Assembly (NCBI GenBank): GCA_946965045.2
Contig: OX337233.1
Location: 186,001-250,000, forward strand
Direction of reading: 5' to 3'
DNA length: 64,000 nucleotides
From: Epithemia pelagica
Taxonomy: Eukaryota; Protista; Bacillariophyta
Numbering within the stretch: position 1 is the stretch's first letter; every line of letters begins with the position of its first letter. The notes below the pieces were generated by a model. It saw only the letters and a program-made list of their open reading frames with translations, made no database searches and was not told the origin of the DNA. This document shows, in pieces, positions 7,792-61,348 of this stretch. Both the position numbers and the translations under genes were made by a program.

Positions 7792-7797
7792 CACGTG
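7792..7797. promoter_or_regulatory. Class B upstream motif (CACGTG G-box/E-box in CACGTGGAAG, followed by TCGCACATAGACTTCATGAC)
   Basis: The same motif lies upstream of K3 (33049), K5 (45591) and K8 (58087), with a variant upstream of K7 (~53220-53340). Function is inferred from position only. Confidence 0.4.
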
Positions 7798-8099
7798 GAA
7801 GCTCTGGAGCCCAAATAGCGTCTGTCGTACGTACGATATCGCACATAGACTTCATGACAGCACCACCATATAAGATGTATCTTTCCGCCAAAAGATGTGC
7901 AAATCCACCCAGATCTGTTCCCAATAACAAAAACAAAACCAAACGATGGACAACATCCACAAGAACAAGGCGTCAAAGCATCCTCATGTCTTTCGTTGAC
8001 TAGCATAAGGAATTTGGGCAAAAAACATTGTTCCATCCGAAAGCCATGTTACATGTTACATCAAAACGACCGACAGCCTTATAGAGCCAAACCAGATGA

Positions 8100-13825: not shown

Positions 13826-13860
13826 AGACGGCACGCGTTGATCAATTTGAGCTCGGTCGA
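13791..13860. repeat. Perfect 35-bp tandem duplication that frameshifts LINE ORF2
   Basis: AGACGGCACGCGTTGATCAATTTGAGCTCGGTCGA occurs twice (13791-13825, 13826-13860). Both ORF2 halves contain SSTELKLINACRL. Confidence 0.95.
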
Positions 13861-19753: not shown

Positions 19754-20559
19754 CCAGAAACCAGAAACAACCACTACACTTTCTGGTGTAGGGTGTGGTA
19801 GTAAAGCTACGTTAAGGGCCAGAAACTATAGGTAAAGCTGTGTCAACGTCACTTTCAATTTCGCCTTCCACGAAATTATAAAACGACAAAAATAAAAGAT
19901 ACCATCAGCACCACAATGTGTCTGTCGCCGTCGTCGCCGTCTTTGGTTTCGGAGATTGACCTTTTCGCGCCTTCTGGCCGCGTTTTCTGCTGTGACTTGC
20001 TGTCATGTCTCTCCTGTGGAGGAAGACTCCAAAGAAGACTCTAGCAAGATGAACATCCTCAACGACAACTTTCATCGCAACAAGCTAGAAATCGTACCTT
20101 GGCTTTCGATTCACAACAGGAGGTCTAGTGCAGCAAAGAACAGAACAACAAAAAGAAGAGCACTAGGGCGATGGTATGCTTCCTCATCCACATATCTTTT
20201 ATGGAACGAGAATCAACAGCAAGACCAGGCCAATCTCTTTGTGTTGGGGCACCGCATGGCAGTCTGGTCGCCAATTTTCGAGGACCCTTTCTCGACACGA
20301 CACCATGAGGACCTGCTGGATCGATCACAAAGTCGCCCCATTGGAGGTAGTTGCGCCGGTGACGAGAAGCGCAGTACTATGGATTGAAGTATGGAACGCA
20401 ATTTAACTCCCTCCTGATGCGTCCGATTGGAGTAGTGAAGAACTGATCATGGGAAAGGGTCGCATCGCCCCTTCAAGTCTAATACATACGAAGATTCAAG
20501 CTGGGTGTCGGTGTGGAACGACAAGGCAGCAACGCTAACCAGAATCCAACGAAGAAGAA

Positions 20560-22958: not shown

Positions 22959-25900
22959 GTGGCCAACACCAACGGTCATCCGATCCCCACTCCAGCGACA
23001 CGCCACAGCCAAACCGACACTCACACGAGACAGGAGGAAAACAACCAACCAGGACCCCCCTCCAGGCCAGCCCACCAACCAACAAACCATCCCCAACCAC
23101 CAACAAACCAAACCGGCACCAAACGACCGATGAACAGGAGAAGACACGACACTACAGCCGTCCACCCACTCCCCGGCCAACTTCAACACACGGACAACAC
23201 CACGGCACCAAGAGCCACAACAAGAACCACCGCCACCCAGACCGACACACCGCCACCTGACGGCATCCAAGAACAATTCCCAGATGGAACGAACCGAGAA
23301 ACCAACAAGGGAAGACAACCGGCCAGTCATTTGCGAGCAATGAACGGTCATAGTCATAATGCTAAGTCATTGAAAGAAACGAACAACGAAACCATCCCCA
23401 CACAAAGTACGAAAACCAAGAGTTTTCCCCAGGTTCAAACACCACAACCACCCAGCAGCATCAACGCCGACAACAACCCACCAGCATCAACCATGCAAGT
23501 TCACTCCAAGCCCTCCTCCGGCCGCCGTCCGTCACGTGCCAAACCACAAGGACCAGCCAAACCCTTCGCGTACAACGACACCACCACCACTACCGCCATC
23601 ACCCCCGAACGCCGCTCCCTCATCAAGAAAACCAAAACCATAGCCCAAGAAAACCACAAACAAAAAGAAACAATGACCTCACCCGAAAACCATAAAAACA
23701 AAACCCAGAAAAATGCAGTCACCACCATGAACATCGATCCAAACCACCAACAACACGAAGAAGACGAGAACCACGACGACACCGAAGCCAGCCCAGACAC
23801 CGGCATGGAGCAGGACAACGACAACAACCACGTCCATGAACACAACGGCGCCAGCCAGGAAAACGAAAACGGAAGCGAAACATGCCTTCACGACAACCAA
23901 GGAGACCCGGACGGCCAAGCCCACAACGATGACCCCAACGACGCCGACCCGGCAAACAATGAGACGAAGGAAGAAGAAGCGAACGAAGACGCTCAAACCA
24001 ACACGGCAGACAGCCCCTCCAACCCTTACCGCAACCTCAAGCAACCCAAAAAGCGCGCCCCTTCCCCAGAACCGGCGATGCTTATCCACCTACACGTCAT
24101 GATCAACCACAATCCGAACCCGCAAGCGGAATCGGCTCTGCCCCGTCTTACCGAACAAGCGGTCAAAGACCACTTGAACCAGGTATTTTTCCACCACAGC
24201 AAGCGCGAAGAGCCCATGTGGCTTCAAGTGCACAAAGCTGAATTCATTGAAACAAAACAAGCTGGACGCCCGAGCTTCCGCCAAAACGACCACCAGCGTC
24301 AACGCAACAACAACGGACATGTATCATCCTTCCATGTCACCCTGTCCCCCGCCCCCGCCAACGACGCCTTCGACACAGAAGTTTTCCGCGAACAAGGCCT
24401 TCGGTGTGTGTTACAGATGTGGCACCGTCACAAGAACGACGACTTCACCCACGACGATTTCGGCGACCTCAGCATTCTGCGGCACGGAACGCCACAATCC
24501 AACCCAACCACCAACCCGCGCTGGGACCAATACAACGTGTACCTCCCAGCAAACAACAACAGGACCAGCGACACCTTCGGGATGGTTGTTGGGATTCCAG
24601 CACAAGCCATCAAACACCGTCGGGCGGCACAGGACTTGACGGCAGCAATTCAGCACTCCCTCCGAGCCCATCTTCCACGCAAGCTGGACTGGACGGCTTT
24701 CTTCGACCACATCGGGTGCCGATCCGGAACCTTTAGTGGGGAACTCAAAAGCAAACAAAGAGGACAGGTCCCCGTCGTCTACATCACGGCCTCGTCTCGG
24801 GCCAACTTCGAACTGCTATTGCGCAGTTACAATGTATTCACAGCAGCCAACAGGGACACTGACATCATGTGGCAAGACAACAAGATCCAACTTATTCCGA
24901 TGCCCAAAACCCAAACGAATCGAACAACGACGTTGGAAACAATTAAAGACATTGACCAATTCTTTGGTTCAAGCGTCAAGATCCGCCTCCGTCCGATCAA
25001 CACAGAAGCAACGGACGGCGATTGGAAACAACTCAAAACAATGGACGAGTACATTGCCGTATTCCCCGAATACGACAATGAAGATCCAGACCCCATCTAC
25101 TACACATTGATCATGCGAAAGACACCGGACACACACCACTTGACCACCAATACAATCCGCACGCATCCAGGATTCCCGACTAATATCCTGCTGCCCACTC
25201 TGGCCGCCGTGGCGGCAACCCCTCCGCGGCAACCAAGCACCAACCAGGACACACCGACTTCCTCCACCCACACCAACAGGCTCATCGCCTTCGCAGACCG
25301 ACTACTGCGACGAAAGACCAACTCGGCAGAGGACCACAACCACCAAACAACAACATCAACCAGAGCTCGCAACACTCCACCAGGCACACTGCCTCCGACA
25401 AAAAGAACCGCCACCCACTTTTCAGACGACGGCAATGACGACGAAGAAGATCCCTACAACGACGGCACAGACTGGACACAGGTCGCGACAAACATGGACC
25501 ACAGCCACCAATACAATCGGCTCGCACACAAACCTGTGCAAAACGACGACCGCAAACCACCGGCACAACAAAACAGCTTTTCTGCCCTCGCAGAAGATGA
25601 ACACTCCCACAACAACAAACGCCACCACGACGAGGACGACGTGGACAGAATGGAGACAGAAGAAGACAACGACGAAGCACACTCCCAGTCTCTTATCCCC
25701 CCGGACGATCTCGACGACAACGAGGCCCATCCGCAATACTCCGCACCAACAGGACACGAAATAGCACTGATCATGCAGTACGTCCGAAACAACAAACCGT
25801 CCCGCACCGCAGAGATGCGAAAATACCTGCAACAAACGAAATCATTCGCGAATGATACCGACGCGGAAGACGCCTGGCGCTATGCTCAGTCTCTGGTTCA

Positions 25901-25982
25901 GACTAGCAGCTCCAGCGTCGCCGGCTCCCGCACCGGCCATGTGGTCCCGCATGCAACATGGGCCAAAGAGCAAAATGAGTAA
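22959..25982 (+). CDS. CRE-like element ORF1 (1007 aa)
   Basis: Long ORF upstream of the RT ORF with low-complexity termini and an ordered-looking central region. No domain recognised. Confidence 0.75.
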   Translation: MANTNGHPIPTPATRHSQTDTHTRQEENNQPGPPSRPAHQPTNHPQPPTNQTGTKRPMNRRRHDTTAVHPLPGQLQHTDNTTAPRATTRTTATQTDTPPPDGIQEQFPDGTNRETNKGRQPASHLRAMNGHSHNAKSLKETNNETIPTQSTKTKSFPQVQTPQPPSSINADNNPPASTMQVHSKPSSGRRPSRAKPQGPAKPFAYNDTTTTTAITPERRSLIKKTKTIAQENHKQKETMTSPENHKNKTQKNAVTTMNIDPNHQQHEEDENHDDTEASPDTGMEQDNDNNHVHEHNGASQENENGSETCLHDNQGDPDGQAHNDDPNDADPANNETKEEEANEDAQTNTADSPSNPYRNLKQPKKRAPSPEPAMLIHLHVMINHNPNPQAESALPRLTEQAVKDHLNQVFFHHSKREEPMWLQVHKAEFIETKQAGRPSFRQNDHQRQRNNNGHVSSFHVTLSPAPANDAFDTEVFREQGLRCVLQMWHRHKNDDFTHDDFGDLSILRHGTPQSNPTTNPRWDQYNVYLPANNNRTSDTFGMVVGIPAQAIKHRRAAQDLTAAIQHSLRAHLPRKLDWTAFFDHIGCRSGTFSGELKSKQRGQVPVVYITASSRANFELLLRSYNVFTAANRDTDIMWQDNKIQLIPMPKTQTNRTTTLETIKDIDQFFGSSVKIRLRPINTEATDGDWKQLKTMDEYIAVFPEYDNEDPDPIYYTLIMRKTPDTHHLTTNTIRTHPGFPTNILLPTLAAVAATPPRQPSTNQDTPTSSTHTNRLIAFADRLLRRKTNSAEDHNHQTTTSTRARNTPPGTLPPTKRTATHFSDDGNDDEEDPYNDGTDWTQVATNMDHSHQYNRLAHKPVQNDDRKPPAQQNSFSALAEDEHSHNNKRHHDEDDVDRMETEEDNDEAHSQSLIPPDDLDDNEAHPQYSAPTGHEIALIMQYVRNNKPSRTAEMRKYLQQTKSFANDTDAEDAWRYAQSLVQTSSSSVAGSRTGHVVPHATWAKEQNE

Positions 25983-28900
25983 CCAAGAAATCCTTCCTCC
26001 GAGACACTGCCCGGTGCCCGACTGCCCATGGCAAGTGCCTCCACAATCCAACAAACCACATGCGTCCCTCAAGGAGCATCTCATCACCACCCACGGGGAA
26101 ACAAACCCCTCCGACTACATGACCACCAAATACTGCAGCCAACATGGGTTCCACTTGTGTCAAGAATGCGACACACCGACGACAATATTCACAACACAAG
26201 GACACCTAAGAACACACATAACAAAAAAACATACTAGAAGTAAAACAAACATGCAACTAGTCCTTACAACCTACCGGAATACAACGCCAGAGATCGAAAA
26301 CAACTGGAAGCAAAGCCTTGCCTTCCTGAACCAACTTCGCCCAAGCCCGCCCCCGTTCAGACGGTCCATATGGCACAAGACCAAACCTCCACTCAGGTCA
26401 GAATTCTATGTCACGTATAACAACGTGATAAAATGGGTCCTCGAATCAACACCGACGTTGGCCCCAGCAATCCTCCGTGATCACACACTACCCAAACACG
26501 ACACCGACTCCAGCCCCTTCTGGAAGCTATTGCTCCTCCTGGAACCATTACTGTTGGCCCCCATCCAAAACACCGTCCACGTGACATACTCCAACGCTTT
26601 CCGGGCCAGACTTTCCCTGCTCAAAACAGGAAGAATCGAGGAACTATACAACACAATTTGGCACCCAACACCACTGCCGCTCCAACCACAAAACAGACAA
26701 CACAAGAAAAAACGACAACAGAAACAACGACTGAACACCCACAGCGACGGTCCAAACCTCCCACAGTGGAGACTCACCGCGGCCCAACACACCGCCGACC
26801 TGGGAAACTACCGAGCAGCACTCAAAAGACTGACGACGAATACTCCAACAGCAACCTTAACCCCACCAAGAATTGCAAGATGTCAGACAGAACTTTTCCC
26901 AAAACGACGACAACCACCACCTGGCACACGAGCACAAGGCCACACCAACTTACCGCCACCAACAAACCAATACCTGAAGCTAGAAGACAACATGACCGAA
27001 CTAGCACTCCGACAAATGAAACCCGGAACGGCATCGGGACCGTTCGCCACATGCACGGACATACTAGCCGCAATGGCATTACACCGAACAACACGAGCGA
27101 AAGACGCCACCAAGCCATACTTCGGAAACATAAAAGCTCTCCTCCAACTAGTGGTGACCGCTCAGGTACCTCCACCGATTCAAACAATACTTGCCAGCAA
27201 TTATTTCTTGGCGCTGCACAAAGACATCACCAACCCAGAAAAATTACGACCGATCGGAATTGGAACGGCGATTCGAAGAGTTGCCGCCAAAACAGCTCTA
27301 GTCCATATGACGGACGACATCACGCCACTTCTCCTCAAGGGCGGACAATATGGGATTCAAATCCCAGGCGGGGTCGACTTTGTCGCCCAGACAACCGCCA
27401 TGGCGGTCCGGGAATATATCGACAAACACACAGACAACCAAAAAACACCAACCGACGAACACAATGACGACCAAAACAAAACAAAAACAGCAACAAACTC
27501 CCCAAGCCGAGCTCTGATTTTGCTTGACTTGACTAACATGTTCAATAATGTGTCGCGCACCGAAGCACGACGAATTCTCTTGTCAGAGGAAGCGACTTGG
27601 CCCCTAGTCCCGATCTTTGACCTTCTCACCAACCATCCCTGCGACTCGTGGTACTTCAACGAAAACCACGAACCACATACACTGCAACAAGAAGAGGGAT
27701 TCCCACAAGGGTGCCCACTTAGCCCACTGTTCTCGTGCTTAGTCCTTCTAGCACTCACGAACCAGTTAAACAAAGAACAAGCAAAACGTGCATCAACAAG
27801 AAAACAGTCAGGAGACATCGGAGACGACAACAAAGGTGGTGTCGCTCATACGGCCTCGATAATGGACGACACGTCCGTTTGTCTACCTCATTGTGACCTA
27901 CCATGGTTCCTCTCCCGCTTCCAAGAGCTTGGAGCACCGCTCGGGATCATCCTCAATCACTCCAAAACAAAAATATTAACAACAACCACCGGCAACACGG
28001 CCTGCGACACATTGCCCCGCCGAGCACAACAAAAAGTACAGGAAGCACTATCCTTCCTCTGCCCCGATGAACCAGAACGGGCCGAAATCACCACAGGAGT
28101 CCGTTTCCTCGGACAGCCCATCGGCTCCCAGGTATTTGCCAAACAATACATCAGAGAACGGTTAGACAAAATGGTCGACACAATGGATTGCATCAGCCAA
28201 CTCCAAAACTTACAGACGCAACACACGCTGTACAAATTCTCTTTGGTTGCATCAATCATGCATTTGCTCCCATCCGACATCACCCTTGCCAATCCCGCAG
28301 GAGACCAACGATCAACAATGTGGGACAGCGACACCACGAGACGAACCGACAAACTGACAGCACGCTTCCTCGCCCGTCTCACCTCCACCAGAGACACGGA
28401 CGTCAACGAAACAGCGATAATTATTGCGTCACTCCCTCAACGCCTAGGAGGCCTTGGTTACCAGATGGCCTCCTCCGCAGCGTACCCGCGATTTCTCACT
28501 CAGACCGTGCGAGCAATCAAACTTGCGTCGTCCACAGACACACCAATTCCAAACGTCCACAGCCGGCCCTTCCTCAACTGGGAAGACTCCACCACATCAA
28601 CCATGACCAAATTCCGTAAAGGCCTCTCGCTTTTTGCCCACGAACTGGCAGACAAAGCCCTCTATACCCCATCTCGGTATGACAAACACACACACAACAG
28701 CATGATGAACCACATCATGAGAGAACACGCAATCGAAAGACTGTTCACGATAACAGACGCCAACCAACGCATCTTCTTACCTTCACTGCTTTCCCCACTC
28801 ACAAGCATGGCCTTTTCTCTGCCGCTGACAGCCTCCGAATTCCGACTTGGGAACGCGGTCTTCAAAACGGCAATGAGGAGAAAATTACGTCTACCAGTTT

Positions 28901-29889
28901 TCTCCCAAGACCCCAACCAACTGGCTCCACAATCTTGCAAATGTGCCAAGAAAACCATACTAGACGCACAAGGGGACCACTTGTTTTCGTGCAGCGCCGC
29001 CTCAAAGACTCCCCTATCGAACGCGATCAGAGACACCCTTTTTGATGTCCTGCGCCAAATAGCACCAGCAGCAAAAGAAGTGGACACAAGTCTGGATGTC
29101 CATATAGAACCGCCTGGCCTGGCTCCTCAACACAACCGAAACATCCGACCAGCGGACGTCGGCATGCTCCTTAAACAACCACACCGAAACCAGCACTTTC
29201 GATACACCGCTATCGATATCACAGTCCCCCCTCCACAGAAACCACTGCCCATCCTGGACCCGTCTGACCACGAAAACATTGCCTGTATGGCCTCCAAGAC
29301 GCACCAGGACGCAGCACGTGACAAATTCTGCCGAGACCCCACCACTGCACAACACCTCTACGACAACGGGGTATACCTCCTCCCCTTTACGGTCGATCAC
29401 CTCGGAGGCTTAGGTTCTTTCGCTGAACACCTGCTTTTCCCCAGTGAACACCAACCACACCTCTTTCATCCGGGCAAACCGCCAACGTGGGACGACCCAC
29501 ACTTCGGAAAAAACAGTCTTCGCAGCAGTGCACACCCACAAGCCTTCGCACTCTTTCAGGAAACCACTCACGCCCCGACCAATCTTCTCACAGCAGCCAA
29601 CAAAGAGACAAAAAAATTTTGCTACCCAGAAGCCCATATATACTCGATGGGACACTTTGCCAAGGCATCCCTCAGCCACGCCATCGTCACAAGCTTAGCA
29701 ATCCATGTCAACAACCACATGACAGCCATCCACCAATATCACACCACCCGACAGAAACGAACGACCCAATTGCAAAATCTTTCACGGCCACTTTTTGCAC
29801 CTATAACTCCAATATACTCCCCGGCCAGCATGGAACACTACCTGCCCACCGCGGCAACCGCCCCACTTCTCTGCGAACTCGCCGCTTAG
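25975..29889 (+). CDS. CRE-like element ORF2: zinc fingers, reverse transcriptase, RLE endonuclease
   Basis: N-terminal CPVPDC...HLITTH and CQEC...HITKKH fingers; RT motifs KLRPIGIG, LDLTNMFN, GFPQGCPLSP and IMDD; RLE motifs CKC...DHLFSC, RPAD and AIDITV. The ATG at 25975 overlaps the ORF1 stop. Confidence 0.92.
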   Translation: MSNQEILPPRHCPVPDCPWQVPPQSNKPHASLKEHLITTHGETNPSDYMTTKYCSQHGFHLCQECDTPTTIFTTQGHLRTHITKKHTRSKTNMQLVLTTYRNTTPEIENNWKQSLAFLNQLRPSPPPFRRSIWHKTKPPLRSEFYVTYNNVIKWVLESTPTLAPAILRDHTLPKHDTDSSPFWKLLLLLEPLLLAPIQNTVHVTYSNAFRARLSLLKTGRIEELYNTIWHPTPLPLQPQNRQHKKKRQQKQRLNTHSDGPNLPQWRLTAAQHTADLGNYRAALKRLTTNTPTATLTPPRIARCQTELFPKRRQPPPGTRAQGHTNLPPPTNQYLKLEDNMTELALRQMKPGTASGPFATCTDILAAMALHRTTRAKDATKPYFGNIKALLQLVVTAQVPPPIQTILASNYFLALHKDITNPEKLRPIGIGTAIRRVAAKTALVHMTDDITPLLLKGGQYGIQIPGGVDFVAQTTAMAVREYIDKHTDNQKTPTDEHNDDQNKTKTATNSPSRALILLDLTNMFNNVSRTEARRILLSEEATWPLVPIFDLLTNHPCDSWYFNENHEPHTLQQEEGFPQGCPLSPLFSCLVLLALTNQLNKEQAKRASTRKQSGDIGDDNKGGVAHTASIMDDTSVCLPHCDLPWFLSRFQELGAPLGIILNHSKTKILTTTTGNTACDTLPRRAQQKVQEALSFLCPDEPERAEITTGVRFLGQPIGSQVFAKQYIRERLDKMVDTMDCISQLQNLQTQHTLYKFSLVASIMHLLPSDITLANPAGDQRSTMWDSDTTRRTDKLTARFLARLTSTRDTDVNETAIIIASLPQRLGGLGYQMASSAAYPRFLTQTVRAIKLASSTDTPIPNVHSRPFLNWEDSTTSTMTKFRKGLSLFAHELADKALYTPSRYDKHTHNSMMNHIMREHAIERLFTITDANQRIFLPSLLSPLTSMAFSLPLTASEFRLGNAVFKTAMRRKLRLPVFSQDPNQLAPQSCKCAKKTILDAQGDHLFSCSAASKTPLSNAIRDTLFDVLRQIAPAAKEVDTSLDVHIEPPGLAPQHNRNIRPADVGMLLKQPHRNQHFRYTAIDITVPPPQKPLPILDPSDHENIACMASKTHQDAARDKFCRDPTTAQHLYDNGVYLLPFTVDHLGGLGSFAEHLLFPSEHQPHLFHPGKPPTWDDPHFGKNSLRSSAHPQAFALFQETTHAPTNLLTAANKETKKFCYPEAHIYSMGHFAKASLSHAIVTSLAIHVNNHMTAIHQYHTTRQKRTTQLQNLSRPLFAPITPIYSPASMEHYLPTAATAPLLCELAA

Positions 29890-34734: not shown

Positions 34735-35937
34735 TCAAGTTTCAGCCTTTCCTTCATCACCACGGCGTGTATCGGGCCTTGCTCGTTTATGAGCTGATGT
34801 CGAGGTGGAGAAGCGTGAAATATCAGCATGTTGGATATTCCTTCCTTCCCCCAAAAGACACCATCTGTTGGGCTGCTGCTCACAGAGTCGTTGAAAACAC
34901 CACGTATGCTTGTCCAGTAGTGGTAATGTCGCACAGGCAGAACTGCCAAAACCACTTATCACGGCAACATGATTGGCAACAATCGCCATACTGAAGTGAT
35001 CGCGGCGATTTCCGAATGGTGGGAGATTCCACACGCGGTTGCGGTGCGTATCCAAGACTTCCACAGTTGAATTGCGCCATCCACCCGCCACCACCAGACA
35101 AGATCCCACGGTAACCACTGCACAAGAACTTCGTGCATTGGAAAGCACCATATTAGAATGAGCGGTCCAGTTCGACGAGAAAGAAATGAACGTCGAGCCA
35201 GTTTCCTTTTTTGTCTCATCACTGTCACATGGCCTTTCGAAGTCCACGTACTCCACCGAGTCAAGATGATGGCCATGCTCTGTTTCGCCTCCAACGACAT
35301 AGATGCAGTGGCCAATGACCGCACTGGTACAAAATTGTCGAGGAATAGTCATGCTTGGTCCCGCAGTGACAGTATGGTTGCTAGTGTCAATAATATCCAC
35401 CGAAGACAAATAACGACCGTTGTAGCCGCCCATTACAACGATGTATCGGTTGTGAACCGCGACAGCACAACATCCAAACCGTCGCGTTGATAATCGACAT
35501 GTCAATGTCGTCCAATTACTCGTATGTGTGGTGCTTGCTGTTAAAAATGGTTGTAGTATATCGTTCGCATCAATGCGTTCGATACAATCCAAAGTTGCTG
35601 TATTGCGACCTCCCATCACGTAGACGCCGCCATTGCACAAAACAGCGGCATGTCCTCGACGACTCTTGTTCATTGGTGGCCCCTCTCGCCACTGCTTGTC
35701 TGGGTCTGCCAAATTTAATACAAGAATGGAATTGACCTCGCCATAACCTGTTCGATATCCGCCCAACACGACGACGGTTTGTTCCGTCTTGTTATCGGGA
35801 TGATCGAGAACGACCGAAGCATGATAGTAACGCCATCCACCCTCAAGAGGAGGCCAGTCCTCGAAATTCCATTCAGGTGTCTCGTCTAACAGGACAAGGC
35901 CCGACTGCCATGCTTTTTCTTTCATCGTCGTGGCCAT
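34735..35937 (-). CDS. Kelch-repeat protein K4 (400 aa, intact)
   Basis: Uninterrupted Kelch ORF from MATTMKEKAW; ends HKRARPDTRRGDEGKAET. Confidence 0.92.
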   Translation of the reverse strand: MATTMKEKAWQSGLVLLDETPEWNFEDWPPLEGGWRYYHASVVLDHPDNKTEQTVVVLGGYRTGYGEVNSILVLNLADPDKQWREGPPMNKSRRGHAAVLCNGGVYVMGGRNTATLDCIERIDANDILQPFLTASTTHTSNWTTLTCRLSTRRFGCCAVAVHNRYIVVMGGYNGRYLSSVDIIDTSNHTVTAGPSMTIPRQFCTSAVIGHCIYVVGGETEHGHHLDSVEYVDFERPCDSDETKKETGSTFISFSSNWTAHSNMVLSNARSSCAVVTVGSCLVVAGGWRNSTVEVLDTHRNRVWNLPPFGNRRDHFSMAIVANHVAVISGFGSSACATLPLLDKHTWCFQRLCEQQPNRWCLLGEGRNIQHADISRFSTSTSAHKRARPDTRRGDEGKAET

Positions 35938-36391
35938 GGTTTCACAAAATGACTGCAGCAAATTTATGGGGATCGAGACACTGTCTTGTAAGAGGCACGT
36001 AGGTTTGCTCTTTCGTTGCGATGCTGATGCTGACGGGTGCGGACTGGAAGCACGACTGACTTGACGAAAAGGATGGACCGAAGATGAGTCGCTTTCGTCA
36101 CAAGACAAATCGTGACCGTAGCCACGCAATGAAGAAGATCACGCACTCTTGTTCGGAGTACCGTAGAAGTTTTATTGGATACCGGAATAAACTAGCATCC
36201 CAAATTTCAAATTTGAATCGTGACGCCAACCACCAACTGTCATTTCGACGCCGGCCCTTCCAATGGAAGGATTACTTAGACGCGTGGCAGGTGAGACGGG
36301 CGGTAGACTTCACACAGTAGAGTTAAGGTTTAGTCTGTCTGCTGTCCTTGTTTCTGCGGACCTCTAATGGCGAATTTGTTCCATCCTGCTA

Positions 36392-38774: not shown

Positions 38775-40064
38775 ATGACAACAACGACTTTCGACCTCAA
38801 CGAGCCAATGGACCGCACCATGCCTCTTCCAGAAACGACAATGGACGTAAACAACCCTGAAATGAACGAATGCGATCCATATCAATTGCGACGTACCCGG
38901 ATCAGCCCCAAGATGAAACAACGAATGGTGGAGCACTTTGGGAAAGAACCGTTTTTGCCAAGATTGACCAACACCAAAGCCACTGACCGCACTGCACAAG
39001 CCATTCTCGATTTTGATAGAGACGTCAGGGGCAGAGGACGTGCTAATGTGGATTGGTCCAAGCTGTCGCTCCGCCATTCGGATATCGGTGACGTGGGCAT
39101 TGAAGCGCTCGCCCGTGTTTTTGTTAAAACGACAACAAACCGAGATCCTGAGCTGAGATTGTATTTCGTAAAAGCCCTGGACGACGAAATGGCGGTTCGG
39201 TTGGCGAATGCTATGGATCAAAATCCGTCCTGGGAGAAGTTGTCTATTCAGCACTGCAATTTTGGATCGCGTGGATGGAAAGCACTGGTTGGTGCTTTGG
39301 GCAACAATCACGTTTGGCAGGAGTTGGAGCTTGTTAGTACGAACCTTGAAGATGAAGGAGTTGAAGCACTGGCAAAAGCACTGCAACAAAATACCCAATG
39401 GACCAACTTCGAGCTCTGGGACATACAGTTTTCTTCTGTGAATGGAGTCAAAGCCTTGGTTGAAGCCTTGAGTGTCAACAAAACATGGAAATCTTTCCAA
39501 CTTGAGGTACGATTTGGTACACGGGTTCCGAGGATCCGCGACTGTGAAATGGAAGCATTGTCACATGCCTTGCGTTGCAATCAATGCTGGGAAACGTTTA
39601 GCTATACATTTCCCTCTGATTTTGATGGAGGACTGGGATCCGTTACCAGAACACTGCATGGCAACTCAGTCTGGCGAGTGTTTGATATGGATTTAGAAAA
39701 GGCAACACATGTCGACATACTAGCCGAGGCTCTCCGTCGACAAACCTCTTGGAAATATTTTGCTTTGAGTCTCCCTTATGGCACTCCCGACCAAGGGGTG
39801 GAAATGTTGGCCAATCTACTAAAAACGTCACCAAGCTGGGAACGGTTTGTTTTACATGTGCGAGGTCAAGAAGTTTGGTCATGGCTCAAGGTTGGTCCAG
39901 CCATTCTCCAACGGTTGGAGAAAAACTGGAACTCATTGGTGCTTTGGTTTCCATACTCGAACAACAACCCCATTCAGCACCTGCCCTTTCTGCTAGAGAA
40001 CCATCCCGACGAAATTGGAGTGACGGCAGAAACCATTTCAAAATTTATTCCTGACCCGTCATGA
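38775..40064 (+). CDS. RNI-like leucine-rich-repeat protein (probably the 5' part of the LRR-TIR gene)
   Basis: About 28-aa repeats: LSLRHSDIGDVGIEALARVF, LSIQHCNFGSRGWKALVGAL, LELVSTNLEDEGVEALAKAL, FELWDIQFSSVNGVKALVEAL. AT-rich sequence lies upstream of the ATG. Confidence 0.85.
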   Translation: MTTTTFDLNEPMDRTMPLPETTMDVNNPEMNECDPYQLRRTRISPKMKQRMVEHFGKEPFLPRLTNTKATDRTAQAILDFDRDVRGRGRANVDWSKLSLRHSDIGDVGIEALARVFVKTTTNRDPELRLYFVKALDDEMAVRLANAMDQNPSWEKLSIQHCNFGSRGWKALVGALGNNHVWQELELVSTNLEDEGVEALAKALQQNTQWTNFELWDIQFSSVNGVKALVEALSVNKTWKSFQLEVRFGTRVPRIRDCEMEALSHALRCNQCWETFSYTFPSDFDGGLGSVTRTLHGNSVWRVFDMDLEKATHVDILAEALRRQTSWKYFALSLPYGTPDQGVEMLANLLKTSPSWERFVLHVRGQEVWSWLKVGPAILQRLEKNWNSLVLWFPYSNNNPIQHLPFLLENHPDEIGVTAETISKFIPDPS

Positions 40065-40086
40065 CAAAGCAACCGATGCCCTGGAA

Positions 40087-41991
40087 ATGGCAGAGTATTT
40101 GGGACACTGCTGGCAATCCATGGATTTGTGCATGCTGGCTTCAAATCGGGCACTCCGTGTCGGTCGACGGTTTACCATTCCTCGAACCATTTCACTTCAC
40201 CACACGCCACGGTTGACCTTTCCAGCAGCCCTTGGATTGATCCAGTCAATTCAAGGTGATGGTGCAACGGCAGAGAACATTGACAGCACCAGTGCTTCCA
40301 GGGCTTCTATACCATCAACCGCTCTTGCATCTAGACCACAAAGCAATGTCCATTGGACTCGTTTGTCGTTGAGTCATCTGGACATTAGGGAGGACGGAGC
40401 CAAAGCCATTGCGGACCTGTTACAAAACAGTCATCAATGGAAAATTTTGGATCTAGCACATACGCCTCTTGATGATACTGGGATCAAGGCGCTGGTTGAG
40501 GGTATGAAGAGCAATCGTGATTGGCGTTGTATCAATTTATCCCATACCAAAATTGGCCAACGGGGAGCACGGTACCTCCGTTATTTTTTGGACGGTAACA
40601 CCACATGGTCCTGGTTCTGGATCTCCAACTTGGACATCAACGATCAAGCACTTCGGAGGTTGTTTCTTTCCATTGATGATCGTCCGTGGCATACCATTCA
40701 TGTCGGAACAAATCAAGCAAATGCTCTTTCTTCCTCTATTCATCGACCCAACGTTCCGTTGTTAACAACCGGTCGTTATCAGGCCACGAGCAACGAAATA
40801 ACTCAAGAATGCAGTCTCATTACCAAGTCCAAAAGTGATTCGCTGTTGGGAGAAAATTTCAATTTACTTGGGCTGATTATTGCGCGAATAAGTGAAGACG
40901 TGGAATGTTTGGATACATCTCTTGATCTTACCTTTCTAATTGGGCATGCTCTGATTTCCAAGTTAGATTCGATGCAGTCATGGAGCTTTGTCGAACTCGG
41001 CGAACGACTTTTGGAAGTATCAGCGGTACTTGCAAAAATCAATAAGATACGACTTAAGATGGCAGGAACAGAGGCACTGAAACAGTTGTCTGAACATCAC
41101 AAAGAGAAACTTCAAGAAATTTTGAGACTTGGAATCGAGATGGCAAAGATGATGCTTGGCAAGCTTCCTTCTGAAAACCAGAAACCGGAACACGACATTT
41201 TCATTTCTTTTGCTGGGGAAGTTTGGAAAGAACGTGAGTTTGACTATGTAACCAGGTTGGAGCATGAGTTGCAAAACGCGGCTGGTGGCGGCAACGCACT
41301 CAATATTTTTGTGGCAGAGAAGACCATGAAGCCCGGACAACAGCCAGATCCGGAAGTGACCATGTTGACGCATGTACTAACAGCACGAGTGGTTGTGTGT
41401 GTGACGACTACACATTATGTCCAAAAGAAATGGCCGATTGCTGAACTTCTCTGTGCATTAGCTCGGAATGAGATGGCTTGCCCACATTCGATGCTCAGTC
41501 CAGTGGTAGTGGACGCCTTCCCTGGATGCCAATGGGTTCTTCCACCTTGTCGCTCTACAATGAGTGCGTCGACACCGGCAATTTGTACTCGGGATGCGAG
41601 CGAATGGATCAATGATTTCATTGGTTTGTTTCCAACTAAGCTACCGCCCATACATAGGTGTACCATTGATGGCGAAAATGTCTATGGTAAGTGTTTCCGG
41701 AAAAGTACCGGTAGGAAAAATTCATGTGTGACTTTTTGAACTGGACCTAAGCGGTTGCCTGGTTGTTGTTGCTATGTGGACTTGAACGGAACAGATTCCA
41801 GATACAAACAGTTGGTTGGTCACATGGAAGAGGTCGCAAAAGAGGTGATCTCTTGTTTAAAAATCCATCAGGAACGCGCCCTCGCCCTGTCAAATAGACG
41901 AGAGCGCCGGTGCAACGAAGATGATACTACCTCGCACCAAGATCCTTCGCCTAGGGAGAGGAAACGACGCAAACCTTCCAATAATGACTGA
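40087..41991 (+). CDS. LRR - helical region - TIR domain protein (probable intron 41687-41794)
   Basis: LRRs LSLSHLDIREDGAKAIADLL, LDLAHTPLDDTGIKALVEGM, INLSHTKIGQRGARYL. TIR from 41191: HDIFISFAG...IFVAEK...VVVCVTTTHYVQKKWPIAEL. A GTAAGT donor at 41687 and AG at 41793-41794 join in frame to DSRYKQLVGHMEEVAKEV...RKRRKPSNND (stop 41991). Confidence 0.8.
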
Positions 41992-44262: not shown

Positions 44263-45465
44263 CTAGGTTTCATCCGTCCCTTCATCATAACGGTGAGTAT
44301 CGGACCTTGAACGTTTACAAGCTAATGTCGATGTGAAGAAGGGTGAGATATCATCATCTCGGATACCCACACCTTCAAGAGAATGATACCATCCGTTGGG
44401 CTGCTGCTCACAGAGTCGGCGAAAACACCACGAATTCCTATCCAGTAGTGGTAATGTCGCACAGGAAGGATTGCGGAGTCCACCAATCACGGCAACTTGA
44501 TTGGCAACAGTCACCATAGTACAGTCCTCGCGGTGATTTACGAGTGGTGGGAGATTCCAAACGCGGTCGTGGTGCGTATCCAAGACTTCGACGGTTTGAC
44601 GGCTTCCTCCGCCCACAATAAGACAGGATCCCACGGCTACCATTGCAAAATAAGCTCGAGGGATGGGAAGCACCAAATCAGAATGAGTGATCCAACTGGA
44701 CGAGAAGGAAATGACTGTAGACAAAGAGTCGTCTTTTCTCTCCTCTGCAAAGTTCAAATACTCCACCGAGTCAAGTTGGCCGTTCTCGTTACGGCCTCCA
44801 ACGACAAAGATGCGGTGGCCAATAATGGCACTGGCACACCATTGTCGTGGAGCAGTCATTGATGGTCCCGCAATGACAGCGTCATTGCTGGTATCGATAA
44901 TATCCACCGACGACAAAGAACGATCGTTGTAGCCACCTATTATAACGATGTATCGGTTGTGAACTGGAACAGCACTACATCCTCTTCGTTCTGTTGATAA
45001 TCGACATGTCAATGTCGTCCAAGGGCTCTCCTGTGTGGTGCTGGATGTCGAAGATGATCGCAGCAAATCCTTTACGTCAATTCTTTCGATACAATCTAAA
45101 TATAATCTTCCATTGTATCCTCCTATCACATAGACGCCTCCGTTGCACCCAACAGCGGCATGTCCTCGACGACTCTTGTTCATTGATGGCCCTTCTCGCC
45201 ACTGTTTGTTTGGGTTTGCCAAGTTCAATACAAGAACGGAATTGGTGACAAATTTGCCTTGTTGACGTCCTCCCATCACGACGACCGTTTGTCTCTTCGG
45301 GTTGTTGTCGTTGCCGTCCGTATCGGGATGATCTAGTACAACCGTAGCATGACGATAACGCCATCCACCCGCAAGAGGAGGCCAGTCATTTTGATTCCAC
45401 TCAGCTGTCTCTTCCAAAAGGACAAGGCCCGACTGCCATGCTTGTTCTTTCAATGTCATGGGCAT
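44263..45465 (-). CDS. Kelch-repeat protein K5 (400 aa, intact)
   Basis: Uninterrupted Kelch ORF from MPMTLKEQAW. Confidence 0.92.
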   Translation of the reverse strand: MPMTLKEQAWQSGLVLLEETAEWNQNDWPPLAGGWRYRHATVVLDHPDTDGNDNNPKRQTVVVMGGRQQGKFVTNSVLVLNLANPNKQWREGPSMNKSRRGHAAVGCNGGVYVIGGYNGRLYLDCIERIDVKDLLRSSSTSSTTQESPWTTLTCRLSTERRGCSAVPVHNRYIVIIGGYNDRSLSSVDIIDTSNDAVIAGPSMTAPRQWCASAIIGHRIFVVGGRNENGQLDSVEYLNFAEERKDDSLSTVISFSSSWITHSDLVLPIPRAYFAMVAVGSCLIVGGGSRQTVEVLDTHHDRVWNLPPLVNHREDCTMVTVANQVAVIGGLRNPSCATLPLLDRNSWCFRRLCEQQPNGWYHSLEGVGIRDDDISPFFTSTLACKRSRSDTHRYDEGTDET

Positions 45466-46811
45466 GCTTCCAAACGTTTTGACTGCAGAATTTATGTGGA
45501 TCACAGAAGAGTGCTTTTGCGGCTGTTGTGAGTTGTTTTGGTATTACATGGATCGATGGATGGAAGCGAGAGGACTCTTACAGTACAATACACGTGGAAG
45601 CTTTGGAGCCCAGAGAGCGTCTGTCGTACGTACGATATCGCACATAGACTTCATGACAGGACCACAGCAAGCACAGCGTATCTTTCCCCAAAAGATGCGC
45701 GTCTGTTCCTAAAACCAAACGATGGACAACATCCACAAGAACAAGGCGTCGAAGCATCCTCATGTCAAAACGATCCACAGCCTTTTATAGAGCCAAACCA
45801 GATGAGGACCCCACTGTCACGACAACAAAAAAAGAAACCAGCCTTCGGAATGAACAAGGCCAATTGTGGACGGGTGCATCTGCGGATGGGTCAGGAATGT
45901 ACAGGATTGGAACAAGCCTCGAGTGTGGTCAACAGTCACTCAGCTGTGGTAGAACAACGAGTGGTACAACAACCACCACCAGTCAAGCTTTTCCCTGGCT
46001 TCATCAAGCAACCATGATGACTAGCATGATGACGACGACTGCAGCCCTGCCTCAAGACAATAGCAGCAGGACCTTGAAGACAAAACGACAAAGTCTCAAC
46101 CACCCAAACCACAACAACTGGCAACCGGCAACATCCACACCACCACTCTGACACTCGCAAGTGGCACTGGTGCAGATGTCCGATTCTTGGTTGTTGTTGA
46201 ATTCCACTCGCTCGGGGACATAGTGGTTGTTGAGGCAGTCCCACACACAACGTTTCCCAGATGTTTACTTACCCACAACCCTTTTTGCCATTAACGTCCG
46301 AACCATTGACCCCTGTTCAGACCACCACTTTCTCAAGGCAAGAGAACAATCAACCGTAGCCAGAGCAAATGCTCACCGTCATTGAGGCTTGGTTAGATCA
46401 AGGTAGCTCCGAGCATAGCGCGCCTCTGTCTGTCTCCACAGTCACCAGAGTGTCTCCCTGTTATGTGGACACGGAGACGATGCATTCCAAGGATGGAAAC
46501 GGGTGGTGCGAGGGAGTATTACTTGCCACGGAGAAATACCGCAGGGACTGCCAAAGGACTCAACAATACGACAAAAATAGCACTCAACACAGCGCAAAAC
46601 TCTGCATAATCCATGACATTGTTTTGTCGTTTTGGAACAGTCGCGTTCTCCTAGACATGCCGTATAGCATCATTAATGATTTCATTTCTACTACAGGGAT
46701 TCACATCATAATTCCACAGGTAGCAGACAATAAATAAATATGTTTGAGATCAAAATGATTATTTGATAATTTCACCATTGTAGGTGACATTAATGCAACG
46801 TGATGCCCACT

Positions 46812-51970: not shown

Positions 51971-53158
51971 TCAAGTTCCATCCTTCCCTTCATCACCACG
52001 GCGTGTATTGGGCCTTGCGCGTTTATGAGCTGATGTCGAGGTGGAGAAGGGTGAAATATCAGCATGTTGGATATTCCTTCCTTCCCCAAAAAGAAACCAT
52101 CTGTTGGGCTGCTGCTCACAGAGTCGTTGAAAACACCACGTATGCTTGTCCAGTAGTGGTAATGTCGCACAGGTAGGACTGCCAAAACCACTTATCACGG
52201 CAACTTGATTGGCAACAGTCACCATACTGAAGTCATCGCGGCGATTTCCGCATGGTAGGAGATTCCACACACGGTTGCGGTTCGTATCCAATACTTCCAT
52301 ACTAACATTGCCTCGTCCTCCCGCCACAACCAGACAGGATCCCACGGCAACCACTGCACAAGAAGTTCGTGGGTTGGAGAGCACCATTTCAGAGTGAGTG
52401 TTCCAAGCGGACGAGAAGGAAATGACTGTAGACAAAGTGTCGTCTTTTCTCTCCTGCGTAAATTCCAAATACTCCACCGAGTCAAGATGGCCATTGTCGT
52501 TATGACCTCCAACGACAAAGATGCGGTGGCCAATCACCGCACTGCCACAAAGTTGTCGTGGAACAGTCATGGATGGTCCCGCAGTGACAGTGTGGTTGTT
52601 TGTATCTATAATATCCACCGACGACAAATAACGATCGTTGTAATAGCCACCCATTACAACGATGTATCGGTTGTGAACCGCAGCAGCACAACATCCATGT
52701 CGTTCCTTTGACAACCGACATGTCAATGTCGTCCAATGACTGTCCTGCGTGGTGATGGTTGTCAAAGATGATTGCAGAAAATAATTGGCATCAATTCGTT
52801 CAATACAAGCCAAAAGTCCTCGACTGTATCCTCCCATCACGTACACGCCGCCATTGCAAACAACAGCGGCATGTCCATAACATCTCTTGTTCATGGGCGG
52901 CCCTTCTCGCCAGTGCCTGTCTGGGTCTGACAGATTCAATGCAAGAATGGAGTTGACATAGCCTTGGCCTTGTTTGAATCCTCCCAACACGACGACGGTT
53001 TGCTCCTCGTTGTTATCGGTAGGATTCAGTACGACGGAAGCATGATAGTAACGCCATCCACCCTCAAGAGGAGGCCAGTCCTCGAAATTCCATTCAGGTG
53101 TCTCTTCCAAAAGTACAAGGCCCGACTGCCATGCTTGGTCTTTCAGTGTCGTTGTCAT
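51971..53158 (-). CDS. Kelch-repeat protein K7 (395 aa, intact)
   Basis: Uninterrupted Kelch ORF from MTTTLKDQAW. The longer 502-aa track ORF includes non-homologous upstream sequence. Confidence 0.92.
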   Translation of the reverse strand: MTTTLKDQAWQSGLVLLEETPEWNFEDWPPLEGGWRYYHASVVLNPTDNNEEQTVVVLGGFKQGQGYVNSILALNLSDPDRHWREGPPMNKRCYGHAAVVCNGGVYVMGGYSRGLLACIERIDANYFLQSSLTTITTQDSHWTTLTCRLSKERHGCCAAAVHNRYIVVMGGYYNDRYLSSVDIIDTNNHTVTAGPSMTVPRQLCGSAVIGHRIFVVGGHNDNGHLDSVEYLEFTQERKDDTLSTVISFSSAWNTHSEMVLSNPRTSCAVVAVGSCLVVAGGRGNVSMEVLDTNRNRVWNLLPCGNRRDDFSMVTVANQVAVISGFGSPTCATLPLLDKHTWCFQRLCEQQPNRWFLFGEGRNIQHADISPFSTSTSAHKRARPNTRRGDEGKDGT

Positions 53159-54805
53159 GATCCCAATGTCGACAAGAAATGGCAGCACGAGAGCGGGTCT
53201 ATTTGTATAATAGAGCAACGCGTGGAAGTGGAAGCTTTGCTTTTTTGCGTGGAGACCGGCGCGCGTGGAGACAGAAAAGGTGTGCCTGTCCTGCGTACGA
53301 TGGTGAAGGGCAGTCAATCGCACATAGATTTCATGACAAGCCCCCAAAAGTATCTTTTGCTGTAAAAGATACGACGACGAGGGAGAGAGAGAGAGCGACA
53401 TTTGTGATGAAGAGTCCTTCTGTATGATGAATAGGTCCACAGATTGACAATCCCTTATTTCCAAGTCATCTCGTCCCACGCCATTTATGGAGCAACACCA
53501 TTCTTCCCTTGGTCCTATACAGTCTGTTCACAACGACAACAACAACAGAGAGAATGGTCTTGTTGACTTCTTGATCCAATGATTCGAATGTGCACCGCTC
53601 ATTGGGTTGTTTTCGAGAATGTCACGTGGATTTGGTTGGACCGCAAAGGTTGGTCCTGTGGCAGACGCGTATTGCACTGGTTCAAGGGCCTCCATTCGCC
53701 AAGGTGGGTGTCAGGACCGGTGCTACATTTGCCAATGGGTGATGGTGTTGTCTCGATTGAAAACCACAAGAGTTCAAGAAGGAAAAACTAGACCGGATGA
53801 GTCGTCGCTTGGATGCACCTGGCGTCGAGAACGTACAAGAGTTTTGTGAGTCAGGCTATGTCAAATTGCCGGTGTCAAACCACTAATGACGAAAATACAC
53901 CGTTGCAACAATAGAGGCCCTGGAAATTGCAGGATGAAACTGACAGATTCGAGAGTTGCATTCTTGTGGGTCCTTTCCAAAAACATCCAGTTCCGGGATT
54001 TCTGAAACAGAGGTGGTAGTACAACGGCAAGAACATGAACAAGACAATGACAGAGTGGCCTTGTCCAATGCTTGTGTGTTCTCTGACATCAAACACCGAT
54101 CGCGAACATGGATACTGACTGTGAATCCAAGCCTGGTAGTAGCTGCAGCGGCGGCAACATTGCAGTTTGAGCGTGGCTCGATCGATTCTAGGACCAAGTG
54201 GAACAATTCTGGTCGAGACAAGTCTAGAGTCCTTTGAGTATTCGTTTCCAAGAAGAGGAAGAAACTTGACAAAACAGGAAAATCCAGTTGCTGCCGGCCT
54301 TGAAGCGTAAGCGCAGAATGCCCGTAACAGTGATGAAGGTGATGTTTGTTGTTGTTGTTGGAATATCCAACAATACAATGAATGCTCCACAGTCTGTCTG
54401 GTTGTTGGTTCCTTTCGCATACCGCGTCGACGAGAAGCAACGACACTGCCCACATGCTGAGGACGGAGACATGGGTAGCTTGCGAATCCTCTGGGAAGGT
54501 AGTTCGTCGACCGAGCTGTTGTTGACTGTTGACACTTGGCAACCTCGTTCGGCGTCTTTTACGAAAAGCACCGGCAGGTTGAGACGGACAAGCATTAAAA
54601 GTCGAAAGTCATCTGGAATTCATAATGCGGCGGTACGATTGCTGTAAAGCTGCGCAATGCATGTTCTGATGATGGTGGGTTGTAAGATATGGCCGTCCAC
54701 GTTCCACATCGTCCATTGTCGTCGACCCGTTGTTCGCCACGCAACAGTCCTAGCGTTTCTAATATCTTTTACTGTCCTAAAGATAGGCTTTTTTCCATTA
54801 TTAGT

Positions 54806-60148: not shown

Positions 60149-61348
60149 CTAGGCTTCATCCGCCCCTTCATCACCACTTTGAGTATTCGACCTTGCGCAT
60201 TGACGTGCTGATGCCAATGTCAAGATATCAGCATCTCGGATACCTATACCTTCAAGAGAATGATACCATCCGTTCGATTGTTGCTCACAGAGTCGACGAA
60301 AACACCACGTATTCTTGTCCAGTAGTGGTAATGTTGCACAGGTAGGATTGCGCCATCCACCAATCACGGCAATTTGATTGGCAGCGGTCCCCATAGTACA
60401 ACCATTGTGGTAGTTAGTGAATGGTCGGAGATTCCACACACGGTTGCGGCGCGTATCCAACACTTCCACAGATGATTCGAATCCTCCCGTCACAACCAGA
60501 CAGGATCCCATCGCAACCATTGCACAAGATCTTCGTGCATTGGAAAGCCTCAACTCCGAATGATTGGTCCAGGTGGGTGAGAAAGAAATGAACGTCAAGC
60601 CAGTTTCCTTTTTTGTCTCAACACTGTCACAGGGTGTTGTGTCGTCCAAATACTCCACCGAGTCAAGATTGCCATGCTCATTACGGCCTCCAACGACAAA
60701 GATACGGTGCCCAATGACCGCACTGGAACAGCATGCTCGTGGAAGATTCATGGATGGTCCAGCAGCGACAATGTGATTGTTGGTATCAATAATATCCACT
60801 GACGACAAATAGCAATCGTTGTAATAGCCACCCATTACAACGATGTATCGGTTGTGAACCGCAACAGCACAACATCCTGATCGTCTCGTTGATAAGCGAC
60901 ATGTCAATGTTGTCCAATGGCTCTTCTTCGAGCTGCTTGATGTCGAAGATGGTTGGAGCAAATCGGTGGCATTAATTTGTTCGATACAATCCAAACTTGA
61001 ATATCTATTAGTGTATCCTCCCATCACGTAGACCCCTCTATTGCACACAACAGCAGCATGTTTATAACGACTCTTGTTCATGGATGGCCCTTCTCGCCAG
61101 TTCTTGTCCGGCGTTGCTAAATTGAGTACAAGAACTGAATCGAGCTCGCCTTGACCTGCTCGGTATCCACCCAACACGACGACGGTTTGTCTGTTGTTGT
61201 CCGCACCGAGATGATTTAGCACGACCGATGTATGATACTCTCGCAATCCACCCTCAAGCGGAGGCAAGTCCTCGAAATTCCACTCGGGTGTCTTGTCGGA
61301 AAGGACAAGGCCTGACAGCCATGCTCGTTCTTTCAGTGTTGTGGTCAT
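60149..61348 (-). CDS. Kelch-repeat protein K9 (399 aa, intact)
   Basis: Uninterrupted Kelch ORF from MTTTLKERAW. Confidence 0.92.
   Translation of the reverse strand: MTTTLKERAWLSGLVLSDKTPEWNFEDLPPLEGGLREYHTSVVLNHLGADNNRQTVVVLGGYRAGQGELDSVLVLNLATPDKNWREGPSMNKSRYKHAAVVCNRGVYVMGGYTNRYSSLDCIEQINATDLLQPSSTSSSSKKSHWTTLTCRLSTRRSGCCAVAVHNRYIVVMGGYYNDCYLSSVDIIDTNNHIVAAGPSMNLPRACCSSAVIGHRIFVVGGRNEHGNLDSVEYLDDTTPCDSVETKKETGLTFISFSPTWTNHSELRLSNARRSCAMVAMGSCLVVTGGFESSVEVLDTRRNRVWNLRPFTNYHNGCTMGTAANQIAVIGGWRNPTCATLPLLDKNTWCFRRLCEQQSNGWYHSLEGIGIRDADILTLASARQCARSNTQSGDEGADEA

Follow-up and report, generated by a model that had tools for sequence, protein, structure and literature searches.

What kind of protein joins leucine-rich repeats (LRRs) to a TIR domain when no nucleotide-binding module stands between the two, and is the diatom gene that appears to encode such a protein whole? 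The question arises from a 64,000-nucleotide stretch of the Epithemia pelagica genome (NCBI GenBank assembly GCA_946965045.2, contig OX337233.1, positions 186,001 to 250,000 of the forward strand), which is here called the window. In the window, the forward-strand open reading frame (ORF) 40087–41739 encodes 550 amino acids (aa) comprising five RNI-type LRRs followed by a helical domain and a TIR. The reading favoured here, which we hold with moderate confidence, is that the locus (38913–41991) is one frameshifted copy of a lineage-restricted, diatom multigene family, the intact members of which would act as NTPase-less LRR-TIR sensors. Judged by sequence, the proteins of this family are soluble and about 930–1270 residues long, with RNI-type LRRs, a five-helix domain and a C-terminal TIR, and with no NTPase between these parts. 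The gene was searched as separate pieces (the upstream ORF, exon 1 and the exon 2 ORF) and no repaired or spliced sequence underlies the results.

Extent and integrity of the gene

The preliminary description of the locus placed the start of the gene at 40087. This start does not hold: the methionine at 40087 is an internal residue in the paralogues, and an upstream LRR ORF (38775–40064, 429 aa, ending at the TGA 40062–40064) has been cut off from the remainder by a one-nucleotide insertion. For the loci that were fetched, the close paralogues come from ENA assembly ERZ21939226, and in the intact one, P0003 (930 aa; L001 6001–8793), the two window ORFs correspond to a single reading frame. DNA alignment places one extra A in the window within the A-run 40040–40043, where the window reads CATTTCAAAATTTATT and L001 reads CATTAC-GAATTTATT. 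When P0003 is used in tblastn, the match passes from frame 1 to frame 2 at this run, residues 1–382 matching 38913–40046 in frame 1. The paralogue proteins are continuous across ETITNLFLTNHEKATDALEMAEYLG, where the window copy is split, and four of them (P0002, P0003, P0005 and P0007) run uninterrupted through ETITNLFLTNHEKATDALEMAEYLGQCW, which spans the end of the upstream ORF and the start of ORF 40087–41739.

As the +1 insertion separates the first LRR block, ORF 40087–41739 is a partial gene. By comparison with its paralogues, it is the 3' two-thirds of an ancestral gene, which is reconstructed as encoding two LRR blocks, of about ten and five repeats, with a conserved spacer between them, and then the helical domain and the TIR. 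DNA homology among the copies extends from ~38885 to ~42014, and the probable start codon lies at 38913, the position of the initiator methionine of P0003. An intron that bypasses the frameshift was considered and rejected; the codons on either side of the lesion are kept as coding sequence by the paralogues, and no plausible splice sites spanning it were seen.

The window thus holds what is probably a pseudogene or a truncated allele. Given a real frameshift, this copy could yield an LRR-only product at most, and a TIR product could arise only via a transcript that starts internally. Two other copies are damaged in the N-terminal LRR block, L002 by an in-frame stop (4821–4823) and L003 by a frameshift (at about 4990–5043), and in both of these the 3' LRR, helical and TIR parts stay open despite the lesions. 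Either the 5' end of these copies decays first or the 3' part serves alone. It might be argued instead that the frameshift stems from misassembly of a short homopolymer, and that the window holds an intact gene of ~1000 residues in which both LRR blocks precede the helical domain and the TIR. The lesion consists of one additional A, giving a run of four, although a homopolymer of this length is a short one for accurate long reads to get wrong, and the contig names, ending in 'l', suggest that a long-read assembler was used. Both halves also keep long open frames, with ratios of nonsynonymous to synonymous substitution (dN/dS) below 1 (upstream 0.59, downstream 0.42–0.46). Since L002 and L003 carry their own, distinct lesions in the first LRR block, real decay is the likelier explanation; the stop in L002 is not an indel, and the assortment of lesions fits birth-and-death decay. 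Further, no indel is listed at the site in the reads, though coverage there is not clearly displayed. An assembly error is consequently regarded as unlikely, while keeping some weight.

At the 3' end, the span 40087–41991 put forward earlier stands as a sensible two-exon model for this part of the gene, but not for the whole gene. Read from the sequence, the GT donor follows GENVY-G, and the region downstream of the AG acceptor continues in frame with ORF 40087–41739 across the intron (Table 1). The donor after GENVY-G and the acceptor ACAG/A(T/A)TCC (the slash marking the splice point) are kept in L001, L002 and L003. Intron lengths differ by non-multiples of three, as introns should. The three loci also have the exon 2 start, [D/E]SRY[K/P]QLV, in common; the exon 2 peptide is kept in L001 and L002, and only its start in L003. 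No Pfam match was found for exon 2. Near the C-terminus, in the charged tail, exon 2 carries a basic motif, RKRRK (41959–41973), kept in L001 and L002 as PRQRKRRKP, and by its sequence this motif looks like a monopartite nuclear localisation signal.

TIR, helical and repeat domains

The TIR had been recognised from its motifs in the preliminary description and is now confirmed by profile and fold comparisons; the refuting outcome named there, a failure to match any TIR fold, did not occur. Pfam TIR_2 matches aa 371–477 of ORF 40087–41739 with E 1.2e-6 (29.4 bits for the whole ORF and 30.4 bits for the segment, the cut-off being 28), and it matches 28 of the 31 relatives described below, the best with E 6e-11. 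The domain holds the βA motif DIFISFAGE and the αC motif VQKKWPIAEL. A first AlphaFold run, using the 533-aa exon-1 protein and eight paralogues, gave a pLDDT of 42.9 and was set aside except for the LRR block, the sole part above 70. A second run, in which the helical and TIR segment was modelled with the 31 relatives aligned, gave a mean pLDDT of 78.8 and a pTM of 0.79. When the second model was compared with 48,161 PDB representatives using VIA-align, the 14 best matches were all TIR domains (Z 9.8–7.8, root-mean-square deviation 2.6–3.5 Å, 109–126 residues). By Z, the list is headed by TIRs of animal adaptors and receptors, namely IL-1RAcPb, TIRAP/MAL, Hydra TRR-2 and MyD88, with SARM1 at Z 8.7. 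Foldseek returned no match against the PDB at E <= 0.001, though nearly all its top rows were TIRs, and the neighbours of the model in the ESM Atlas are TIR clusters.

In sequence, the family profile ranks the solved TIRs differently. Roq1 comes first (E 9e-10), followed by AT1G72930 (1.5e-8), RPV1/RUN1 (5e-8) and then L6; these plant TIRs are followed by PdTIR and AbTIR, and then by TLR1 and SARM1, which match less strongly (E 0.003 for SARM1). Bacterial PdTIR is also a weak match to the TIR in a PDB sequence search with ORF 40087–41739. The entry name of AbTIR is 'NAD(+) hydrolase', and AbTIR, like Roq1 and RUN1/RPV1, is NADase-proficient. In NCBIfam and PADLOC, the matches were weak and at the level of the TIR only (retron TIR, E 0.002; PDC-S66, E 1e-7); they place the protein in no bacterial defence system. 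Exon 1 stops after βE. From the order of secondary structure in the model, the last TIR helix, αE, is probably provided by the start of exon 2, SRYKQLVGHMEEVAKEVISCL.

The earlier assignment of the WPIAEL glutamate to the αC WCxxEL position also holds. In the profile alignment, Glu453 aligns with the second glutamate of Roq1 WCLEEL and with the equivalent residues of AT1G72930 and RPV1. The conserved glutamate at this position is the catalytic residue of Roq1, RUN1 and SARM1. TIR NADases, including SARM1, the plant TNLs, AbTir and Thoeris ThsB, require this glutamate as well as oligomerisation. In the alignment of 31 sequences, which includes six close paralogues, W449 and E453 (the W-x3-E of WPIAE) are the sole invariant columns, and VQKKWPxAELLCGLARN is the strongest family motif.

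The region preceding the TIR had been expected to form a coiled-coil linker of ~100 aa. Instead, it models as a compact, globular domain of five helices (model residues 33–138, corresponding to aa 254–359) that is conserved together with the TIR, not as a long coiled coil. The helices lie at 33–47, 51–69, 73–77, 80–105 and 115–138 of the model, with pLDDT mostly 87–97, and in most of the 31 relatives the domain is aligned alongside the TIR. Pfam gave no match to it in any of the 31 members, and the VIA-align fold search found only weak, unspecific matches (Z 5.5). One weak row in the ESM Atlas, to bacterial TIR/EAD2 proteins with a TM-score of 0.46, serves as a lead only.

The LRRs are of the RNI or NLR type, as had been thought. 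In ORF 40087–41739, W-x2-L-x-L units at aa 90, 118, 146, 174 and 201 lie 27–28 residues apart and define five repeats. RNI-like LRR proteins of the PDB, including NOD2- and NLRP-type LRRs, match aa 87–200 in phmmer with E 8e-12 to 1e-7. The score of Pfam LRR_6 is 21.7 bits for this ORF, just below the cut-off of 23.4, and lies above it for the upstream ORF. The spacer that separates the two LRR blocks is the most conserved part outside the TIR, with dN/dS of 0.31–0.50. Between the window and L003, its synonymous divergence (dS) is 0.16, against 0.77–1.08 in other domains, and DNA identity reaches 95% over 40133–40282. This low dS points to a gene-conversion tract or to constraint at the nucleotide level, for example from an internal start or a regulatory element.

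Scans for a nucleotide-binding domain were empty, as the preliminary description had it. Neither window ORF contains NB-ARC, NACHT or ROC (Pfam, E up to 1) and no NTPase domain was found in the relatives of 930–1271 aa (Pfam, E up to 0.01–0.1), the intact, long relatives showing only LRR_6 and TIR. The Walker A pattern, searched as a regular expression, is absent from the window ORFs and from P0003, P0012, P0014, P0041 and P0016; P0015 has one chance match, which falls within its TIR. Equally, no signal peptide or transmembrane segment was seen in Kyte–Doolittle hydropathy, a simple measure and not a trained predictor. The N-termini are hydrophilic, and the highest 19-residue averages are 0.77 in the upstream ORF and 1.43 in the TIR, the latter in the core strand βC. 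The window protein is therefore predicted to be non-membrane.

A different C-terminus is seen in two Epithemia clementina relatives, P0016 and P0042 (KAL7558674.1 and KAL7560427.1), residues 956–974 of which form a strongly hydrophobic end (FVVCSVGLLFSLLLCLSSL, Kyte–Doolittle 2.43). This end may be a tail anchor, by which some members would be membrane-attached, unlike the window subfamily.

Family, selection and genomic surroundings

The combination of domains was described from the start as unusual, and it is. An exhaustive hidden Markov model search of 1.84 billion representative proteins with a profile of the helical and TIR module gave 31 proteins at E <= 0.001. The named relatives are hypothetical proteins of the diatom Epithemia clementina only (KAL7561740.1 and KAL7558674.1), with the LRR_6 and TIR layout. 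A word-based protein search found ten relatives: nine close paralogues, on at least seven contigs besides the window's own, and one weak match (E 9e-5) confined to LRRs. The arrangement proposed for the window ORF, with the LRRs first and then the helical region and the TIR, recurs in relatives, the module lying behind LRR_6 in P0012, P0014 and P0041 (from this genome, where sampled) and in the two named proteins. It also lies behind ankyrin repeats in P0023, before LRRs in P0032, and in short tandem genes on a metagenome contig, L006. Many short forms come from small contigs and a prokaryotic gene finder, which makes their full architecture uncertain. On L006 (an ENA ERZ26692762 contig from another organism), two short genes lie adjacent on the same strand, at 3533–4435 and 4562–5434, with no LRR detected in either; the latter is the helical and TIR match P0031, and the former matches TIR_2 below the cut-off (E 4e-5).

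Comparison of the window with three paralogues gave dN/dS of 0.24–0.32 for the TIR, 0.40–0.48 for the linker and helical domain, 0.32–0.77 for the LRRs and 0.59–0.60 for the upstream piece. By these ratios, the gene is under purifying selection, and the TIR is its most constrained part. Which copy the window resembles most changes along the gene, in a mosaic: it is nearest to L003 in 38885–39034, 39548–39838 and 40133–40282, and far nearer to L001 and L002 from 40433 on. This pattern suggests gene-conversion-like exchange of sequence between the copies.

Copies of the gene sit among kelch-propeller genes at five loci of this genome, namely the window, L001, L002, L003 and L005, the locus of the divergent paralogue P0014 (1160 aa). 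Coordinates of the locus and of the kelch genes of the window are collected in Table 1.

Table 1. Parts of the LRR-TIR locus and kelch genes in its surroundings, in window positions
Feature	Position	Strand	Evidence and remarks
N-terminal RNI-type LRR block, about ten repeats	38913–40064	+	LRR_6 35.9 bits; tblastn; W-x2-L-x-L repeats; a separate ORF here, running from 38775
A-run with one extra base relative to the intact paralogue	40040–40043	+	DNA alignment; paralogue proteins; tblastn frame change
Conserved spacer between the two LRR blocks, aa 1–85 of ORF 40087–41739	40087–40341	+	Paralogue alignment; dN/dS
Second LRR block, five 27–28-residue RNI-type repeats, aa 86–215	40342–40731	+	PDB phmmer; LRR_6; spacing
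Five-helix domain, aa 254–359	40846–41163	+	AlphaFold model; alignment of relatives
TIR, βA to βE, aa 366–533, up to the splice donor	41182–41686	+	TIR_2; family profile; fold matches
Glu453 codon, putative catalytic glutamate	41443–41445	+	Profile alignment to Roq1, AT1G72930 and RPV1; invariance
Intron, 108 nt, phase 1	41687–41794	+	GT..AG; splice sites kept in paralogues
Exon 2, stop codon 41989–41991	41795–41991	+	Peptide kept in L001 and L002, its start kept in L003
Kelch-propeller gene, flanking	34735–36129	-	Kelch_1 E 6e-32
Kelch-propeller gene, flanking	44263–45504	-	Kelch_1 E 1e-30
Further kelch gene	51971–53479		
Further kelch gene	60149–61543		

Other features were seen around the family loci. 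At L004 (on Epithemia clementina contig JBGMNV010000247.1), the LRR-TIR gene is immediately preceded by a gene (4630–8027) with EDR2_C, a domain that takes its name from a plant regulator of disease resistance; its presence there may be a coincidence. In the window, 22959–29889 (+) holds two long ORFs of 1007 and 1345 aa, the second with RVT_1 (E 2.8e-9), and has strong strand skew (GC about -0.25 to -0.31, AT +0.22 to +0.41); this region is probably a retrotransposon. Three consecutive long ORFs (688, 1300 and 712 aa) at 11768–19774 (-) have no Pfam matches, and the AT skew over 16–20 kb is -0.21.

Proposed function and comparison with known systems

Intact members of the family are proposed to be innate-immune-like sensors. 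In this mechanism, the LRRs would keep the protein inactive until a ligand is bound. The helical domain would then gather the TIRs, a role that falls to NB-ARC in plant TNLs and to the SAM domains in SARM1. The gathered TIRs would form a composite active site, as in SARM1, the plant TNL resistosomes and bacterial TIR effectors, and the assembly could cleave NAD+ or produce a nucleotide signal, leading to cell arrest or death. Both oligomerisation and NADase activity are inferred. More tentatively, and with a good deal more doubt than confidence, the family may represent a hitherto undescribed class of innate-immune receptors in diatoms, in which the five-helix domain replaces the STAND NTPase in coupling LRR sensing to TIR NADase assembly, working with the clustered kelch propellers. 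If so, this would be a third eukaryotic way to switch on enzymatic TIRs, beside the NB-ARC resistosomes and the SAM ring of SARM1.

Several points weigh against a working, enzymatic sensor family. As the window copy, L002 and L003 are all broken in the first LRR block, the family may be largely decaying, or the 3' part may be used alone. The locus was matched in four sequencing runs of one study, none of them on record as RNA; in these runs, it is represented by nothing more than short Logan contigs in which paralogues are mixed, and neither the frameshift site nor any transcript was seen in them. Variability of the LRRs among paralogues was not concentrated on the concave strand positions, as assessed over only four to five repeats in ten sequences. 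At the sole Epithemia clementina locus examined (L004), there are no kelch neighbours. The arginine of the plant 'FRG' motif lines the NAD pocket of RUN1 (PMC7075850), and its position in the window TIR is occupied by alanine (SFAGE). Finally, the αC glutamate is also common among certain groups of TIRs for which no enzyme activity is reported (PMC7075850).

The last point bears on a different reading, in which the TIR would serve as a scaffold without enzyme activity, as in TLR, MyD88 and MAL signalling, recruiting other TIR or helical-domain proteins and cleaving no NAD+. The structural matches that rank highest by Z (IL-1RAcPb, TIRAP/MAL, Hydra TRR-2 and MyD88) are TIRs of animal adaptors and receptors, though the gaps in Z between TIR classes are within about 2 units, and the short, tandem helical and TIR genes of another organism could be adaptors. 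However, W and E are the sole invariant residues across 31 divergent relatives, which is what is expected of a catalytic centre, and the best profile matches are to NADase-proficient TIRs (Roq1, RUN1/RPV1 and AbTIR). A scaffold is on balance rather unlikely. It is also conceivable that the family and the kelch arrays serve self/non-self or mating-type recognition, or some other developmental signalling, in place of pathogen defence. The family is multi-copy, mosaic, rapidly turned over and placed beside diversified kelch genes, features that are shared by allorecognition loci, and papers on diatom mating mention LRR proteins. TIRs with the catalytic glutamate are nevertheless known, in bacteria, plants and animals alike, overwhelmingly from immunity or cell death, and a recognition role is considered distinctly improbable.

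Very little has been learned of the means by which diatoms, which are major primary producers, detect viruses, bacteria and parasites. The family is a testable candidate for an algal, cell-autonomous immune sensor in which LRRs are joined to a catalytic-type TIR via a helical domain and without an NTPase, and it offers a compact, natural test of the minimal needs for TIR enzyme activation. This value rests with the intact members (P0003, P0014 and the Epithemia proteins) and not with the window locus, the copy there being probably broken. Literature searches found no paper specific to diatom LRR-TIR proteins, and TIR, LRR and kelch go unmentioned in the Epithemia genome paper. In a 2010 survey, no attached effector domain was found on diatom LRR receptors (PMC2939053). 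A 2025 coccolithophore study states that TIR-based antiviral systems were undescribed in microalgae before it, and the TIR genes that it reports are without LRR or NBS (PMC12489294). A 2026 atlas of eukaryotic TIRs contains many eukaryote-only clades without a studied member (PMC13142454). The window family fits this description; the terms diatom, stramenopile and helical are absent from the text of the atlas.

Among known systems, the plant TNLs (Roq1, RUN1/RPV1, L6 and RPS4) and the TIR-only protein AT1G72930 have the TIRs nearest in sequence, and share with the window family the βA motif DVF(I/L)SF.GE and the αC W-x3-E. The TNLs are likewise cytosolic, with LRRs as the likely sensor. In contrast to them, the window family lacks an NB-ARC or P-loop, has the order LRR then TIR instead of TIR-NB-LRR, and has RNI-type LRRs, a novel five-helix domain before the TIR and alanine in place of the FRG arginine. 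It is not an NLR family, because no NTPase was found.

Toll-like receptors resemble the window family in having LRRs N-terminal to a C-terminal TIR, and in the TIR fold itself (matches to TLR1, TLR10 and the IL-1R family). They differ in that the window family lacks, by hydropathy, both a signal peptide and a transmembrane helix separating the LRRs from the TIR; its LRRs are of the cytosolic RNI/NLR type and not the ectodomain type, and the context of its glutamate resembles that of enzymatic TIRs. The absence of signal peptide and transmembrane helix, together with the RNI-type LRRs, excludes it from the TLRs.

In logic, the nearest system is SARM1, a TIR NADase the activity of which depends on a non-NTPase oligomerisation domain directly before the TIR, and which has the same W-x3-E. 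Where SARM1 has ARM repeats and tandem SAM domains, the window family has LRRs and an unrelated five-helix domain, which by analogy may be where oligomerisation occurs. The closest proteins of all are the Epithemia clementina ones, KAL7561740.1 (1073 aa) and KAL7558674.1/KAL7560427.1 (997 aa). These are true members of the family, with the same LRR_6-helical-TIR layout and a WPMAEL motif, and are ~40% identical to the window protein in the helical and TIR part; KAL7558674.1 differs from the window subfamily in its hydrophobic tail.

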